From sequence record MN871445.1: a stretch of 64,000 nt of DNA. One strand, 5' to 3'. The stretch's first letter is position 1. Each line of letters starts with the position of its first letter. The translations under genes and the position numbers were made by a program. The notes under the pieces are model-generated. The model had not been told where the DNA came from and did not search any database. It worked only from the letters and a program-made list of their open reading frames with translations. Shown piece after piece: positions 10,846 through 49,172 of this stretch.

Positions 10846-11913
10846 ATGAACACCGAATTCATCAACAAACTTCTCGCCGCTGGTTTTGATGTGCAAACAC
10901 AAAACCAAGGTACTGTCGTGACCGTAAGCTATACTCAGGTAGGCCCATCTTTCGATTCTAATCTAAAGGAAATCGAAAACCAATTCAAGTTGTTCAATGA
11001 TGGTAATAACCCCGTCGATTTTTATTCGGACGCAACTTCAGCAATTGAAGAAATGCGGGCCAACCCCGCCTTAGTTAAGGTTATCCAGGACCATGCGCGG
11101 GGGGCTATGGTTAATGATTGTGGGGACATAGCCACACTCATTAGTGCGGGTGTCGAGGCCAAACGTACCGTTACCATTAATTCATGGGATTGGTTTATTG
11201 CTGGGGTGGAGGACTATTATCGGTTGACTATAAATCCCGACTCCGTAATCTCAAATGATCAAATGCAGCTGGTCAGGGACAATATAAAAACTCAACTGGG
11301 CGATCGATGGATGGTTGTTCTTGGCAGTCGCGTACATGGGATTGATATCTTTAAACCCAGGAATGTTGTCAAATACTTTACTAATCTAATCGATACATTA
11401 TCAGATACTAGTAATCAATCACCCTTGTGTTTTACTTTTTTAGGGGTTGATTGGTTGATACATCGCGGTCCGGCAAGATATATTTTTCAACCCAAAGGAA
11501 TGGTTAGTCCTGAAGATGCTGCTACGGTATACGCCATCATTGAACGTGAGTTGGTGCAGGATGGGCAATACCTCTTTCAACTTGCTGAATATGGTCCATG
11601 GATTACCGTACTCAAGAATATTAAATCTGATACGCTAGATTTCTATAAAGAATTAGATTTGATTTTTCACACCTCTTTTGTAGGTCCTCAGGTAATAGTC
11701 ATCGATGGTCAGGGGTGGTCCATCTCAGGCAGCGATGGTAATTATCAGCTGACCATAAACCCTGATTCAGACATGACTGATAGTGAAATGATGCTGATGC
11801 ATGCCAAAATAGAAACCGGCATGGTGGGGTGGGATGTACGTATTAGTAGTGGTAGTGATGGTCGTCCCGGGTTTGTCGTCGCTAGAAGAGGAGATTCAAA
11901 TGAAATCAATTAA
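10846..11913 (+). CDS. early protein, paralog family A member 4, with internal repeats
   Basis: NKLLAAGFDVQT N-terminus; repeated Y.LTINPDS module. Confidence 0.75.
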   Translation: MNTEFINKLLAAGFDVQTQNQGTVVTVSYTQVGPSFDSNLKEIENQFKLFNDGNNPVDFYSDATSAIEEMRANPALVKVIQDHARGAMVNDCGDIATLISAGVEAKRTVTINSWDWFIAGVEDYYRLTINPDSVISNDQMQLVRDNIKTQLGDRWMVVLGSRVHGIDIFKPRNVVKYFTNLIDTLSDTSNQSPLCFTFLGVDWLIHRGPARYIFQPKGMVSPEDAATVYAIIERELVQDGQYLFQLAEYGPWITVLKNIKSDTLDFYKELDLIFHTSFVGPQVIVIDGQGWSISGSDGNYQLTINPDSDMTDSEMMLMHAKIETGMVGWDVRISSGSDGRPGFVVARRGDSNEIN

Positions 11914-23578: not shown

Positions 23579-25813
23579 ATGCGCTCGCCATTTCTTTATC
23601 CTGAAGATGCAGATTACAAACGTGATTTTGCTATCTTTGGTAGATATATTAAAGATGCTGCTTTTTTGCTACACAAGCAAACGGGATATGACTTAGACTA
23701 CTGCACAGACTGGGTACGTAAGTCTATCAATAAAGGTGGGAAGCACGAAGCGAAAAACCCTAAGGCGTTTATACTCAATTCTGAGAATAATGGTAACCGT
23801 AAACGCCAAGTAACGACCGTCACTGAATACATTGCAAATATCGTCAAAAACAATAAGATTGTTGCACCCTCCATGACGGTGTATTCTCATCCGAAACAGA
23901 AAAAGTCATTACTTGCTGAATTTATTTTGCATAAATTGGATATGCGTAAGAAAGCTAAGAAAGAAATGTTCTTAGCTGAAAAACAAATGAACGAAGCAAA
24001 CCGCCTTGTAAAAGAAGCTACGGCGAATAATGACCAAACCATGGCATCACAGCAAGCTATAGTAGCCGCGACCATGTCTACCGAAAAAGCATACTTTAAC
24101 TGCTTACAGACATCTGCAAAAATTGCGGCTAACAGTTTATCCGGTACGTTCGGTTTTGCGGGAACGGTACTCTTTAATAAAACAGCACACTCATCATTAA
24201 CTTCTATTTGCCGTTGCGCTGCGAGTAATGCAAATGCGAATAATGAAAGATTCCTGTCGGGGAATCGACATTATTGGTCCCTCGAAGTAACGTTGAATAA
24301 TATTGTTAATATCTTGACCACGGTAGACTGCAATCGGGTTCGTGAAGTTGTGGAACGTTACGGTCTGGTTTATCCTACCGTTGAACAAGTTGTAGAAGCG
24401 GTTCGGGGATGCACCGATTACTATTGGAGTAAAAGCAGCCCAGCACTATTTCAAAAAGTCGTGGACTTCATACACACCCTGACCCCAGAAGAGCGGGCCG
24501 GGTATCTGTATAACCAGGATGCTTACCATGTAATGAAATGTAATGATCATTTCTTTAGAGTACTCGTTAAGAAAATGATCACCATCCCCGATGAATTACC
24601 GGATGACCCAGACCACTGGATGAAACTAATGGATGAAGATATCCTAATGTTTGCATCGAGGCTATGTAGTCCTTTCATGTCTGGTAAATCAGTAAAAGAT
24701 TTAGAGAACGCTTATAAGGAAGGAAAAAATAAAGATTATTTGCGTTTTGTAGCCGTCGTTAAAAACGTACTGGTAAACCTGCAAGATTATGCTGATTTCA
24801 TTCAAACATTTTGGGCTACCTCGAACCCACCTATGAGTTTGGCTATGATACCGACCATGATGCGGCGTTGCGCAGTACTGTCGGATACAGACTCCACTAT
24901 TTTCACTACTCAAGATTGGACTACATGGTATCAAGGAAAACTTGATTTTACTTATGAGTCAGAATCCGTATCGGCATTGATGGTTTATTTTACCAGTTGC
25001 ATGACTACACATCTCCTGGCAATGCATTCCGCTCAAATGGGTGTGGACCGAGAACAACTGTATACGTTAGCAATGAAATCAGAATTTGCCAACCCTCTAT
25101 TAGGACTAACTACTCGAGGAAAACATTATTACTCTTACGTCAGTGCTAAAGAGGGCAACGTATATAGTGAATACGTTCTGGATATTAAGGGCGTAGGGTT
25201 ACGTAACTCAAAATTACCGCCAAATATCCGAGAATCGAGCGATAACTTTATTCGTCACGTAATGGATACTATCATGAAAGGCGAGAAACTGTCCGTACAT
25301 GAAGTACTTACGCGGGTTGCCGATGAAGAACGAGAAATTATCCGTTCCATTCATGCTGGCGAACCAACTTACTTATCCGTAGCAAAAATCAACACAGCTG
25401 ATGCCTACAAACAAAAAGAACTGAACTCCACATATCAACTATACGGATTATGGGAACAGGTGTTCGCACCCAAGTATGGACATGCCCCATTACCGCCGTT
25501 TGATTGCGTAGCAGTAAATATCGATGCTAACAATAAAAGCGACATGGCGGCTTGGTTGGATAATTCCGGGGACGAGCAGTTCGCTCAACGTTTCAGAAAT
25601 TGGTTGGCAGCAACCGGCAAAGATAAAATAACGCGTATTTTACTACCTACCGAAATACTGCGGGTACATGGGTTACCTAAAGAAATTATTAATGCGTTAG
25701 ATCTACGTAAAGTTTTGATGAATCTGATGGATGCACACTACCTGATTTTAGAATCATTGGGTGTCTTTATTCGCAACCAACGTATCTCCCACCTCGTCTC
25801 TGATACCTATTGA
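23579..25813 (+). CDS. split family-B DNA polymerase, motif B/C (palm-thumb) subunit (phiKZ gp50-like)
   Basis: motif B KIAANSLSGTFG, motif C LSDTDS, GKHY and IKG; no exonuclease domain or motif A. Confidence 0.9.
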   Translation: MRSPFLYPEDADYKRDFAIFGRYIKDAAFLLHKQTGYDLDYCTDWVRKSINKGGKHEAKNPKAFILNSENNGNRKRQVTTVTEYIANIVKNNKIVAPSMTVYSHPKQKKSLLAEFILHKLDMRKKAKKEMFLAEKQMNEANRLVKEATANNDQTMASQQAIVAATMSTEKAYFNCLQTSAKIAANSLSGTFGFAGTVLFNKTAHSSLTSICRCAASNANANNERFLSGNRHYWSLEVTLNNIVNILTTVDCNRVREVVERYGLVYPTVEQVVEAVRGCTDYYWSKSSPALFQKVVDFIHTLTPEERAGYLYNQDAYHVMKCNDHFFRVLVKKMITIPDELPDDPDHWMKLMDEDILMFASRLCSPFMSGKSVKDLENAYKEGKNKDYLRFVAVVKNVLVNLQDYADFIQTFWATSNPPMSLAMIPTMMRRCAVLSDTDSTIFTTQDWTTWYQGKLDFTYESESVSALMVYFTSCMTTHLLAMHSAQMGVDREQLYTLAMKSEFANPLLGLTTRGKHYYSYVSAKEGNVYSEYVLDIKGVGLRNSKLPPNIRESSDNFIRHVMDTIMKGEKLSVHEVLTRVADEEREIIRSIHAGEPTYLSVAKINTADAYKQKELNSTYQLYGLWEQVFAPKYGHAPLPPFDCVAVNIDANNKSDMAAWLDNSGDEQFAQRFRNWLAATGKDKITRILLPTEILRVHGLPKEIINALDLRKVLMNLMDAHYLILESLGVFIRNQRISHLVSDTY

Positions 25814-46154: not shown

Positions 46155-46520
46155 ATGTCAATCGATATTACCGAACAAGATTGGAGAGAAGTAGATGTAA
46201 CGACAGACCGCCTTGCTGCAACGGCCTGCCCAGTTGATGATGACCTTTACGATGAAATTGAACATTTCATCGAATTCATTAAACCGATAGCCCATGCCAG
46301 AACCCCTTTTCGATTGGGTTCATTATATCGACAATGGCGTGATTATCGGGGACAGGATATTATCTATTCTCTGTCCCTCAACGAGCTTAAGCGAGTCTGG
46401 ACTGCAATAGCGGTGGTTTGTAACTCTAAGTCCTTACCATCGTATTGCGGCCAAATACCTGAACAATGTATTCTTTACGATAATGCGACTCACCGCATTG
46501 TTCGGTATCTTAAAGATTGA
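46155..46520 (+). CDS. hypothetical protein
   Basis: GGGG RBS; flanked by hairpins. Confidence 0.6.
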   Translation: MSIDITEQDWREVDVTTDRLAATACPVDDDLYDEIEHFIEFIKPIAHARTPFRLGSLYRQWRDYRGQDIIYSLSLNELKRVWTAIAVVCNSKSLPSYCGQIPEQCILYDNATHRIVRYLKD

Positions 46521-46524
46521 TGTG

Positions 46525-46568
46525 TCGGCATAAAGGGAGAGGCTTCGGCCTCTCCCTGTTTATGTTGC
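46525..46568. terminator. bidirectional hairpin with CATA/TATG flanks
   Basis: tcggcataaa-gggagaggc-ttcg-gcctctccc-tgtttatgttg. Confidence 0.8.
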
Positions 46569-46571
46569 CTT

Positions 46572-46898
46572 TTATTTTTTGGCTTTTTTCTTCTCTTCAG
46601 CTAATGCCCGCTCAAGCTTAGTTTGTTCACTCTCAGCTTGGTTGACTCCCTCAGAGTTAGCCAATTCGCATTCCTGCAGTATCCACTCGATCATGTGTCT
46701 GGGTAAAGCCATGAACTCAGTGAACCCCAACCCAAACAAATCCCAAACACGTTGCGCTCTATACTCACGCATCCTCAACTGCCACCCAGTATGTACGCCC
46801 AGAGCTTCGCTCGGGTGTACTAATTGACTGGCAAATGGGGGTATCTTACCAGACCGATCATCGAACAACCCGTAGGTTGTATCGTAGGCTTCCATCAT
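46572..46898 (-). CDS. tail-assembly-chaperone T-like segment (T4 gp51-like); probably translated through a -1 frameshift from the upstream gene
   Basis: VWDLFGLGFTEFMALP..I.W motif; no SD before the ATG; the frame is open back to and beyond the slippery site at 47054-47060. Confidence 0.6.
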   Translation of the reverse strand: MMEAYDTTYGLFDDRSGKIPPFASQLVHPSEALGVHTGWQLRMREYRAQRVWDLFGLGFTEFMALPRHMIEWILQECELANSEGVNQAESEQTKLERALAEEKKKAKK

Positions 46899-47014
46899 GG
46901 TAACTTGAAGGGCGATGGAGTTAGTGATAGTCGGTTTGATTTTCTCAAGCGCAAGTAGGTCATTGTGAACCCCCCTAGGCGGTAAACCAAACCTAGGGTG
47001 GGTAACGTGCAGAC

Positions 47015-48676
47015 CTAGAGCAGAATTTTCTGGAGTCGATTTGATACTAGGGTAAAAAAAGTGCTCACCACGTCCAGAGGTAAGATGATCTGTTCTTTAG
47101 CGTCCGGACGTAGTTGGGTTTCACCGCAACGTTCGCAGGCGTAGTTGACAATACCAATTACCGTAGTAGTGGCATCTTCGACGAACTGATCAACCGTACC
47201 GACGATCAGGTCAACGATTTCACGGTCCGCAGAGAAAGTCCGCGATAGTTCTTCCAAGGTCGAAACGGAATCAATAACCGATTCAGACATCTCACCGGCA
47301 TCAATAATGATGCGGCCAAAATACATGCTGTAGTTACGTAAGGTTTCTACCGTGGCCAGCTGTTGAATGTAAACGTCGCGGTCGACGCCGTGCAGAACGG
47401 AACCAAATGCGGCGTCTGTTTGTTCAACAATACCGTCAACCCAACGAAGTCCAGAGTCCTCATATTCGGTATATGTTGGAACCCTTAACTCCATGGTCAT
47501 TTGGTTGCCCAGGTCGATGGTTGCCGATGCAGGTACTGGGAAGCTAGACTGCATCGCTTTTACGTCGTCCAACTTCATACTGGCGCCTGCGCGATTTTTA
47601 CTCATAAATCTACGCTGGTCTTCACTAAACCGTTTGCGATCCACAAACAAGAGTTTGTTTAAATCTACCACACCACGGTTGACGTGATGACATTTGCTAA
47701 GATCCGCAGTACATGGTTGGGATAGCGGGTACCCATTAGGGTAAATACATGAAACAAATCCCAGAATCATGGAAGGGATATCGGTGATCAGTAGATGATC
47801 TTTGATGGCCTGCCGCTTACCTTCCTCACTGGAATATTCGAGGGAGGTATCATCAACATGGTCTAGAATAAGATCCATGACGTATTTGATAATATAAATA
47901 CGATCGTTATCAAACACGGCGCCTTTGGTTTGGCGGCCCAGCTTAATCTTTTCGGTCTGAATACGACGATCCAGCTCTAAGAGCGCTGCTTCCTGTGGTG
48001 GGATGAAGGTCACCCAGAACATCGAGTTATACATCGGCCATTGTGCATGACCGCCCAAAGACATGCGTGCTTGAACCCGACGGATGGCGGCTTGACCCGA
48101 TAGCTTCGGAGCATTGCTTTCTTGGATTTTTGGTCTTGCGGCACGCAGGCGATCGGCACCGTGGCTCAGATATTGCGCCCAGTCGCGGTCAGCTTGCCAT
48201 GCCGCATAGGTCACATTCTCTTCATCGGCCGGTGACATAAAGTTGACCGCACTTCCGGCAGCCATTACCCAGTCCATACTTGATTCAGGGTCTGGCAGCC
48301 CACCCAAGCTTTTTACGTTGGCGGTGATGTGGGCGATCTGGCGGTATGTTGCAAACAGTAAATTAATTGATTCGGCCGGGGTGATAGCTTTTTTCTGTTT
48401 TTCGTTGATGTCTTTAAACAGGGGCAGCTCGACAGTAGCGTTTGCCGGGAACTCTCGCAAATCTGGGCCGGGGTCAAAAACACCGTCGTCCTTTTCTTTG
48501 CTATCTACTTCCGGTACTTCATCTGAAGGCGCTACTGTTTCTGGTGCGGGTGCGTCTTTTTGGGGTTGCTGTGCGGTAGTAGATTCTTCATCGCCAGCAT
48601 CAAATGCATCCCATGCTGATTTACCCGGGGTAGTTTCATGCATCGGTACGTCGTTGCCGATATTGTTATCGCTCAT
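47015..48676 (-). CDS. tail/baseplate-hub assembly chaperone G-like (T4 gp26-like; phiKZ gp77-like)
   Basis: acidic disordered N-terminus, C-x6-C-H and C-terminal CERCG motifs, GGAG RBS. Confidence 0.55.
   Translation of the reverse strand: MSDNNIGNDVPMHETTPGKSAWDAFDAGDEESTTAQQPQKDAPAPETVAPSDEVPEVDSKEKDDGVFDPGPDLREFPANATVELPLFKDINEKQKKAITPAESINLLFATYRQIAHITANVKSLGGLPDPESSMDWVMAAGSAVNFMSPADEENVTYAAWQADRDWAQYLSHGADRLRAARPKIQESNAPKLSGQAAIRRVQARMSLGGHAQWPMYNSMFWVTFIPPQEAALLELDRRIQTEKIKLGRQTKGAVFDNDRIYIIKYVMDLILDHVDDTSLEYSSEEGKRQAIKDHLLITDIPSMILGFVSCIYPNGYPLSQPCTADLSKCHHVNRGVVDLNKLLFVDRKRFSEDQRRFMSKNRAGASMKLDDVKAMQSSFPVPASATIDLGNQMTMELRVPTYTEYEDSGLRWVDGIVEQTDAAFGSVLHGVDRDVYIQQLATVETLRNYSMYFGRIIIDAGEMSESVIDSVSTLEELSRTFSADREIVDLIVGTVDQFVEDATTTVIGIVNYACERCGETQLRPDAKEQIILPLDVVSTFFTLVSNRLQKILL
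47054..47060 (-). other. candidate -1 ribosomal frameshift site U-UUU-UUU
   Basis: minus-strand codons ACT TTT TTT ACC (T539-F540-F541) 12 codons before the stop; the -1 frame joins 46572-46898. Confidence 0.6.
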
Positions 48677-49172
48677 TGTTCTCTCCAGATTCTTCTCGGG
48701 TTTTTCCCATCAGGTTAGAAAGCTCAAGATAGGTAGGGATGACCTCGTTGGTCCAATCGGCCTGCCAGGCGTAGAATGCCTCACCCATTGGAATAGTATT
48801 GAATTCTATACCTTCCATTTGGTGGGTAATGCTCACCACTGCTTCTTTATTACCGGCTTTGCGATGTGTTTTTACCTCCGCCCTTAATGCTTCCCATTCT
48901 GCTTGCAGGGCCGTATATTGTTGGCATAGTCTCTCTACCCTGGTTACCATGTTTTTGGCTTTAGCATTAAGGTCTTTACTAAGACGTAGAATTTCACCGT
49001 GGTAAGGAGACCCAACTCCGAACATCGGTAATCGCAATACTGGACCAATCTCACATACCGCGGCGACCTGATTGAGGCATGCACGGTATAACGTATCTAG
49101 TTCCACCCAGGTTTGCCCGGGAGTTTGTTTTGCATTAACTCGCGCTTTGCGAGGTTTTTCTGAAGCTGGCAT
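48666..49172 (-). CDS. conserved helical hypothetical protein
   Basis: 168 aa, overlaps the downstream start. Confidence 0.7.
   Translation of the reverse strand: MPASEKPRKARVNAKQTPGQTWVELDTLYRACLNQVAAVCEIGPVLRLPMFGVGSPYHGEILRLSKDLNAKAKNMVTRVERLCQQYTALQAEWEALRAEVKTHRKAGNKEAVVSITHQMEGIEFNTIPMGEAFYAWQADWTNEVIPTYLELSNLMGKTREESGENNER

Follow-up and report, generated by a model that had tools for sequence, protein, structure and literature searches.

A conserved putative -1 frameshift in a gene of phiKZ-related jumbo phages

Gene arrangement at the locus

We analyzed a 64,000-nucleotide stretch (the window) of Serratia/Klebsiella phage KpHz_2 (MN871445.1), in which two neighboring open reading frames lie on the minus strand. 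ORF-A (48676..47015) encodes 553 aa, ends in a TAG stop and belongs to the family of phiKZ gp77, 201phi2-1 gp136 and SPN3US gp39 (phrog_4585); it is preceded by an SD-like GGAG. ORF-B (46898..46572) encodes 108 aa from its first ATG and lies in the -1 frame relative to ORF-A, with no SD-like 4-6-mer at positions -20 to -4, and is probably not an independent gene. Upstream, a 168-aa ORF (49172..48666, minus strand) overlaps the start of ORF-A; it matched no family but sits in the position that the phiKZ gp78/201phi2-1 gp137 homologue holds in relatives and is syntenic with A and B in all annotated relatives. Downstream, a G+C-rich hairpin at 46534..46557, between the convergent ORF-B and a 121-aa plus-strand ORF, is a likely bidirectional terminator ending the transcription unit.

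Twelve sense codons before its stop, ORF-A carries a T7 run (47060-47054, minus strand) that is in phase as ACT TTT TTT ACC, providing a U_UUU_UUU heptamer of the X_XXY_YYZ type. The -1 frame is open from 47096 to 46572 (174 codons) and contains no ATG, GTG or TTG before 46898. Read from the last base of the heptamer (47054..46572), it comprises 160 codons plus stop and corresponds to phrog_12109, here called the B domain. The 116 nt between the 0-frame stop and the first ATG (47014..46899) would be annotated as intergenic, but they are coding in the -1 frame and hold a conserved H-x-x-x-P-x-F-G motif at 47009-46986. Everything that the sequence-only reading had described here, namely the heptamer, the stop-free -1 frame running into an ORF without SD and the stems downstream, is present in the sequence.

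Both stems appear in the predicted RNA fold, but for the 94-nt stretch the fold was not clearly better than those of shuffled sequences (z -1.8; 11 of 200 shuffles fold as well). The larger predicted hairpin (47006..46965, CCCACCCUAGG...CCUAGGGGGG) starts 47 nt after the heptamer, in contrast to the 5-9 nt typical of the common but not obligatory stimulatory hairpins and pseudoknots, is only partly kept in KpGz_1, and is doubtful as a stimulator. No structure was shared across the family (median z -0.3); an alignment-based covariation test was not attempted, as the nucleotide sequences are too diverged outside the heptamer, and we identified no upstream SD-like stimulator. The efficiency of a shift may therefore be low.

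Chance can be excluded as the origin of the arrangement. The window has only 3 in-phase T_TTT_TTN heptamers in 14,186 codons of long ORFs, and only this one lies near a 3' end. The density of -1-frame stops inside gene A of the family is 0.084 per codon, giving a 160-codon open stretch a probability of about 8e-7 per locus, and the same arrangement recurs in all 100 distinct related loci examined.

Conservation among relatives

Conservation of the heptamer and of an open -1 frame in orthologous gene pairs had been proposed in advance as one test of the frameshift, and loss of either as part of its refutation. We examined 100 distinct loci, comprising 80 IMG/VR contigs plus named phages of Pseudomonas, Erwinia, Salmonella, Serratia, Klebsiella, Vibrio, Proteus, Cronobacter, Xanthomonas, Burkholderia, Escherichia and Bacillus, most sharing only 23-35% identity with ORF-A. 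An in-phase T_TTT_TTN heptamer was present in 90 loci, while the remaining ten have noncanonical sites (G_ or A_TTT_TTY, or T_TTT followed by another codon). The first Phe codon was TTT in all 100 loci, against a background TTT share of 0.36, and the preceding codon ended in T in 95, against a background of 0.28, although it encodes ten different amino acids (V, T, L, I, G, A, Y, S, F or H). The loci are phylogenetically related and the counts thus overstate the number of independent events. The signal is conserved at synonymous sites, and its phase is fixed while the length of the T run varies from 5 to 9, which fits ribosomal slippage better than polymerase slippage.

The -1 frame stays open for 150-203 codons after the heptamer in every locus, against a median of 11 for the +1 frame. 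In 28 loci the last upstream -1-frame stop lies 1-4 codons before the heptamer, and there is never one after it, which pins the frame change to this site. The first start-like codon (ATG, GTG or TTG) in this frame lies anywhere from 2 to 151 codons after the heptamer, and no start is conserved.

Several comparisons showed that the extension is coding upstream of any start codon. The PHROG match grew from profile positions 47-145 (45 bits) to 11-145 (55 bits) when the supposedly intergenic stretch was included; tblastn and phmmer alignments started at residues 2-20 of the extension; the H-x-x-x-P-x-F-G motif aligns in A2; and 13 of 19 substitutions against KpGz_1 fall at third codon positions of the -1 frame. 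The split itself is maintained: among the best 150 of 177 hits in 1.84 billion representatives, every B-domain protein has 91-180 aa and none is a long natural fusion.

The A protein has tblastn matches in about 200 phage records. In the roughly 20 annotated records that we inspected, the pair appears as two unrelated hypothetical genes, the second called from arbitrary start codons at 74-182 aa, with 40-200 nt of real coding sequence labelled intergenic and no joined CDS. Our literature searches found no paper on a frameshift in phiKZ-like phages; "gp77" in the Goslar and PCH45 papers refers to other proteins, and the essentiality of the PCH45 pair was not assessed.

Similarity to assembly chaperones

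The sequence-only reading had taken the pair for the G/GT tail-assembly chaperones, with a T/gp51-like motif in the downstream segment. Searches of ORF-A and the extension against Pfam, NCBIfam and PDB sequences, as single proteins and as profiles, gave nothing, and PHROGs gave only families of unknown function. The AF2 model of ORF-A (pLDDT 75, pTM 0.76) found nothing below E 3 with Foldseek against the PDB, and its only matches to annotated tail-assembly or tape-measure chaperones were nonsignificant (E 0.4-2, probability 0.1-0.6). The AF2 model of the extension (pLDDT 86) is helical with a long C-terminal helix, and Foldseek returned only uncharacterized jumbo-phage orthologues.

The comparison with T4 gp51 that had been suggested for the extension was carried out with hhalign and gave a probability of 0.1%, and the T/gp51-like motif is not supported; the lambda T domain was not compared directly, although no named T-domain protein came back from any search. 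Cross-controls of ORF-A against gp51 and of the extension against T4 gp26 were also negative.

A better candidate relative of ORF-A is T4 gp26 (Pfam PF12322; NC_000866 gene 26), named a "hub assembly chaperone" in PMC3004832; the link rests on predicted fold and a short C-terminal motif. With Foldseek against BFVD, the predicted fold of ORF-A matched gp26-type proteins of other large myoviruses (E 2e-5 to 1e-3, TM about 0.5 over the target); eight entries of 246-285 aa annotated as baseplate hub assembly protein, chaperone or hub subunit were found at E 2e-5 to 4e-3, probability 1.0 and TM 0.42-0.53 over the target, both sides being predicted models and not solved structures. The two also share a C-terminal CxxCG...FFxL(L) motif ending within a few residues of the C-terminus; in the ORF-A family, Cys 322, 329, 514 and 517 are nearly invariant and F540, F541 and L543 invariant. 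The profile-profile match to gp26 had a probability of 24-27% (E about 7e-4) but covered only the 26-27 columns of this motif, and leaves homology undecided. No PF12322 match was found for ORF-A even at E up to 10, nor for 19 family members at E up to 0.1, whereas true gp26 relatives all carry this domain. T4 gp26 has 208 aa and encodes its FF motif as TTC TTT, which is not slippery, and its gene is followed by gene 25 rather than a B-like domain. T4 gene 26 also yields two nested products, annotated 26 and 26', but the second is made from an internal start, giving an N-terminal truncation, and not by frameshift.

Interpretation

We consider a conserved programmed -1 ribosomal frameshift the best explanation, and hold it with good confidence. 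In this view, ORF-A and ORF-B are one recoded gene: most ribosomes would translate ORF-A in the 0 frame and stop 12 codons after the two Phe codons, giving the 553-aa short form, while a fraction would slip back one base on U_UUU_UUU, with the P- and A-site tRNA-Phe re-pairing in the -1 frame, and read 160 further codons through the supposedly intergenic stretch and all of ORF-B. The resulting long form of about 700 aa would share the first 541 residues and carry a helical C-terminal domain, the two forms being made from one message in a ratio set by slippage efficiency. Our comparisons demonstrate the site, the open frame and the coding nature of the extension, whereas the slippage itself, its efficiency and the ratio are inferred; we had no direct expression evidence, in the form of a junction peptide, ribosome-profiling data or protein bands. 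That a long form is made by recoding at this site is very likely and, given that, the mechanism is probably ribosomal rather than transcriptional. As the split is kept in every reliable record and contig examined, in phages of hosts from Pseudomonas to Bacillus, both forms and their ratio probably matter.

The observation of the sequence-only reading is thus confirmed and holds across the family. Its interpretation is partly supported: the frameshift fusing two conserved genes has strong comparative support, but the G/GT label holds only as an analogy of expression strategy. As in lambda G/GT and other tail assembly chaperone pairs (P2 E/E+E', phage G gp181/gp182 as cited in PMC8570332), a -1 slip on a heptamer near the 3' end of the first ORF would give a minor, C-terminally extended form sharing the N-terminal part, and the split is kept across very divergent phages; lambda needs no strong RNA stimulator. 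However, the upstream protein has 553 aa rather than about 100-150, the heptamer is U_UUU_UUN, the extension resembles no named T domain, and the pair does not lie between tube and tape-measure genes: its neighbors, here and in relatives, are a helicase, a gp78-like ORF, a gp79-like ORF and a virion RNA-polymerase subunit. Absence of the products from virions is only suggested, as gp77/gp76 and gp39/gp40 are not mentioned in the phiKZ virion atlas or the SPN3US virion mass-spectrometry paper, and the 201phi2-1 record marks neighboring proteins, but not gp136 or gp135, as found by mass spectrometry; binding to tape-measure or tube proteins was not assayed. In E. coli dnaX (tau/gamma), one gene likewise gives two products in a set ratio by -1 slippage on a homopolymeric heptamer, but the shifted frame ends at once and gives the shorter product, and strong stimulators flank the site; here the shifted frame would give the longer product and no stimulator was found. 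The case would represent a frameshift family on U_UUU_UUN with no evident stimulator, showing a G/GT-like expression logic outside the classical chaperone family.

The function is inferred more weakly. The protein is probably a nonvirion assembly factor distantly related to T4 gp26, and the extension would add a second binding surface to a minority of copies. A gp26-like role in tail or baseplate-hub assembly is plausible but not shown, and we consider it about as likely as not; a true functional equivalent of the G/GT tape-measure chaperone is unlikely. The finding gives a handle on a conserved jumbo-phage gene of unknown function and points to tail or baseplate assembly, a step for which we found no assembly factor described in the structural papers that we read. 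A more speculative possibility, which we regard as doubtful, is that across the phiKZ-related jumbo phages, nucleus-forming ones included, the tail or baseplate-hub assembly factor is a large gp26-like protein whose dose of an extended form is set by an ancient and almost universally kept -1 frameshift. If so, gp26-type hub chaperones and G/GT-type tape-measure chaperones would be two solutions to the same assembly problem, and the two-product gene 26 of T4 a third.

Alternative explanations

The same long protein could result from transcriptional slippage, the phage or host RNA polymerase stuttering on the T run and adding one U to part of the transcripts. The site is a homopolymer of 7 bases here and of 7-9 bases in 81 of 100 loci, no RNA stimulator was found, and these phages use their own multisubunit RNA polymerases, whose stuttering behavior was not examined. 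However, the run is always anchored in the X_XXY_YYZ phase, extending 5' into the preceding codon in 95 of 100 loci but rarely 3', and a polymerase would not care about phase. Nineteen loci have runs of only 5-6 T, shorter than the 8-9 or more usually needed for efficient stuttering by bacterial RNA polymerase, and we consider this explanation unlikely. The window contains 9 T-runs and 5 A-runs of 7 or more bases.

Alternatively, B could be a separate gene, translated from the ATG at 46898, from a noncanonical start or by termination-reinitiation, with the T run present only because the protein needs Phe-Phe. Gene callers predict small independent ORFs everywhere, FF is an invariant protein motif shared with T4 gp26, and some relatives have an ATG overlapping the stop of A; in 201phi2-1, for example, independent translation of B is also possible. 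This does not explain the constant TTT and the nearly constant preceding T across ten amino acids, when T4 uses TTC TTT, nor why the -1 frame is open from the heptamer rather than from the stop of A in all loci, with upstream stops crowding up to the heptamer. Conserved residues precede every start codon, start positions are not conserved and the ATG in the window has no SD, making this explanation very unlikely.

Finally, a homopolymer sequencing error or a frameshift mutation splitting one gene is contradicted by the same split and phase in about 100 independently sequenced genomes and metagenome contigs, although homopolymers are error-prone and one record of the SPN3US species (SEGD1) shows the two parts in a single 795-aa ORF. 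SEGD1 differs from both SPN3US and Lh1B by 7 indel columns over the pair, and we set it aside as the odd and unreliable record.

The Proposed Frameshift Site in the Source Phage

The region analyzed, from Serratia phage KpHz_2 (MN871445.1; host given as Klebsiella pneumoniae), is 97% identical to Klebsiella phage vB_KvM-Eowyn and 80% identical to KpGz_1, and all the features of the gene pair are on the minus strand. We first verified the features of the sequence-only reading, and every element that it described was present. ORF-A runs from 48676 to 47015 (553 aa, stop TAG), and ORF-B, running from 46898 to 46572 (108 aa), is in the –1 frame relative to A. The T7 run at 47060–47054 is read ACT TTT TTT ACC, an in-phase X_XXY_YYZ heptamer with 12 sense codons before the stop. 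The –1 frame is open from 47096 to 46572, and its first ATG, GTG, or TTG is the ATG at 46898, which has no SD-like motif, while ORF-A has GGAG. The two stems named in that reading appear in the predicted fold, but the 94 nt after the heptamer fold only marginally better than shuffled sequences (z –1.8), and the main hairpin begins 47 nt downstream. A 10-bp G+C-rich hairpin with a GNRA-like loop at 46534–46557, between the convergent ORF-B and the 121-aa plus-strand ORF (46155–46520), is a likely bidirectional terminator. Two other in-phase T_TTT_TTN heptamers, at 11436 and 23662 on the plus strand, lie inside long ORFs (10846–11913 and 23579–25813) and far from the 3′ ends; whether any –1 ORF follows them was not examined.

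The first sign that the gap between the two ORFs is coding came from protein profiles. ORF-B matches phrog_12109 only from profile position 47 (45 bits), while adding the –1-frame stretch upstream of the ATG extends the match to position 11 and raises the score to 55 bits. Using the 160-aa –1-frame piece as the query, a tblastn search found the distant phages pPa_SNUABM_DT01, FLC9, pEa_SNUABM_54, Xoo-sp14, and PCH45. For the first four, the alignments begin at residues 2–16 of the piece, 63–210 nt upstream of the annotated starts of their small ORFs, and for PCH45, 27 nt upstream; in three of the five, the alignment overlaps the end of the upstream gene.

Conservation of the Heptamer and the Open –1 Frame

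Conservation of a slippery heptamer and of an open –1 frame in related gene pairs had been set out in advance as one test of the model, with loss of the site or stops in the intervening frame counting against it. To perform this test, we collected the region from 80 IMG/VR contigs, found with an alignment of ORF-A relatives, and from the named phages Eowyn, KpGz_1, 201phi2-1, RAY, AH06, OMKO1 (a Phikzvirus), PS119XW, Vibrio pir03, Proteus phage 10, Bacillus AgentSmith, CR5, Derbicus, Caitlin, Kwan, SPN3US, and Lh1B. This resulted in 100 distinct loci, most of which share only 23–35% identity with ORF-A.

The heptamer was T_TTT_TTT in 53 loci, T_TTT_TTC in 34, T_TTT_TTG in 2, and T_TTT_TTA in 1, giving 90 canonical sites. 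Of the remaining loci, five have G_ or A_TTT_TTY and five have T_TTT followed by another codon. These noncanonical sites (G_TTT_TTT, A_TTT_TTC, or T_TTT followed by ATT, ATC, ACC, or TCA) occur in the FLC9 group (our loci L004, L053, L054, and L062), in PS119XW (L096), and in loci L018, L030, L071, L074, and L080; the open –1 frame is fully kept, and slippage may there rely on a single tRNA-Phe or be less efficient. The first Phe codon is TTT in all 100 loci, although TTT makes up only 36% of Phe codons in the rest of the gene. The codon before it ends in T in 95 loci, against a background of 28%, while encoding V, T, L, I, G, A, Y, S, F, or H, which indicates selection on the base and not on the amino acid.

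After the heptamer, the –1 frame is open for 150–203 codons in every locus, in comparison with a median of 11 codons for the +1 frame. The –1-frame stop density inside the gene body is 0.084 per codon; in 28 loci, the nearest upstream –1 stop is only one to four codons before the heptamer and no locus has one after it, placing the change of frame at the heptamer. The first start-like codon in the –1 frame lies 2 to 151 codons after the heptamer (median 35), and there is thus no conserved initiation site. The T run is 5–9 bases long, but its phase is fixed. In a subgroup consisting of PCH45 (L006) and loci L073, L078, and L079, which include the FBKp24-like contigs, the 0 frame runs on for about 38–44 codons after the heptamer instead of 8–20, such that the short form has a longer private tail; these loci also have a second in-phase heptamer, G_GGT_TTT, just before. 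The phage vB_BspM_AgentSmith (L090, 3563–5266), recorded with a Bacillus host, carries the same gene pair with T_TTT_TTA and a –1 frame open for 149 codons past the stop of A, and the arrangement is therefore not confined to phages of Gram-negative hosts.

Further support came from the pattern of substitutions. Between the source phage and KpGz_1, the 116 nt separating the 0-frame stop from the ATG carry 19 substitutions, 13 of them at third positions of the –1 frame, and an H-x-x-x-P-x-F-G motif in this stretch aligns with the N-terminal parts of relatives' predicted proteins. A full HMMER scan of 1.84 billion representatives with the 160-aa piece gave 177 hits. The best 150 of these all have 91–180 aa, with alignments starting anywhere from residue 12 to 71 of the query, and none is a long in-frame fusion; the split is therefore maintained, as expected if both products are needed. 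A single record, Enterobacteria phage SEGD1 (L093, KU726251.1, 1748–4135; SPN3US species), has the two parts in one 795-aa ORF, the C terminus of which matches a B-domain profile (E 2e-12). It differs from each of SPN3US and Lh1B, of the same genus, by 7 indel columns over the gene pair, which looks like sequence noise rather than biology, and these siblings have the usual two-ORF arrangement with the heptamer. We consider SEGD1 unreliable.

Mechanism

The comparison establishes a real and conserved recoding signal, while the slippage event itself is inferred from it. The simplest reading is tandem –1 slippage of tRNA-Phe on U_UUU_UUN, giving a short form that ends 12 residues after the two Phe and a long form of about 700 aa. 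We found no conserved downstream structure and the efficiency is therefore probably modest, as for lambda G/GT. Polymerase stuttering on the T run would give the same protein; the strict phase and the 19 loci with runs of only 5–6 T speak against it but, in the absence of RNA data, do not exclude it. Our literature search, which did not cover subscription journals and thus does not exclude a prior description, found no report of a frameshift in phiKZ-like phages, and none of the annotated records inspected joins the two ORFs.

Predicted Structure and Relationships of the Two Parts

According to the notes in the 201phi2-1 record, ORF-A belongs to the family of phiKZ gp77, 201phi2-1 gp136, and EL gp47, and its neighbors are homologs of gp75 (helicase), gp78, gp79, and gp80 (virion RNA polymerase). 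A tblastn search found the family in about 200 phage records, whereas searches of sequence libraries and the PDB gave no match. An AlphaFold model of ORF-A (pLDDT 75, pTM 0.76) matches, after its orthologs, a series of proteins of about 250 aa that are annotated as T4-like baseplate hub assembly protein, chaperone, or hub subunit (Foldseek E 2e-5 to 4e-3, probability 1.0, TM about 0.5 over the target). Below them comes a tail of nonsignificant tail-assembly and tape-measure chaperone entries (E 0.4–2).

The T4 tail review lists gp26 and gp51 as hub assembly chaperones, and comparison with these two proteins had been proposed beforehand as a check of the functional assignment. With T4 gene 26 (NC_000866, 10803–11429, minus strand; L103), hhalign aligned only the C-terminal CxxCG...FFxL(L) motif (probability 24–27%, E about 7e-4), both for the single sequence and for a 19-member gp26 profile, and profile homology between the families is left undecided by this short match. 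In T4 gp26, the motif, CxxCG...FFxLL, is the very C terminus and aligns with the frameshift region of the jumbo-phage family, but the FF is encoded TTC TTT. Four nearly invariant cysteines in two pairs (residues 322, 329, 514, and 517 of ORF-A; 47018–48676, minus strand) suggest a zinc-binding site, and T4 gp26 relatives also have invariant C82, C84, C187, and C190. The extension is predicted to fold as a helical domain with a long C-terminal helix (pLDDT 86) and matches only uncharacterized jumbo-phage orthologs; it shows no likeness to T4 gp51, and the gp51-like motif claimed for it was not supported.

The sequence-only reading had taken the two genes for the tail assembly chaperone pair of the G/GT type, an interpretation that our results support only in part. 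The expression logic is that of G/GT, but three defining features of that family, the small size, the chaperone fold, and the position before the tape-measure gene, were lacking. The protein is best described as a distant, much enlarged relative of the T4 gp26 hub-assembly chaperone, although that relation rests on predicted folds and a short motif, and the Pfam criterion for the family was not fulfilled. A function in tail or baseplate assembly is plausible but unproven. Neither part is mentioned in the phiKZ virion atlas of 40 proteins or in the SPN3US virion mass-spectrometry paper. T4 gene 26 also makes two nested products, annotated 26 and 26′, but by a different route, the second being an internal product.
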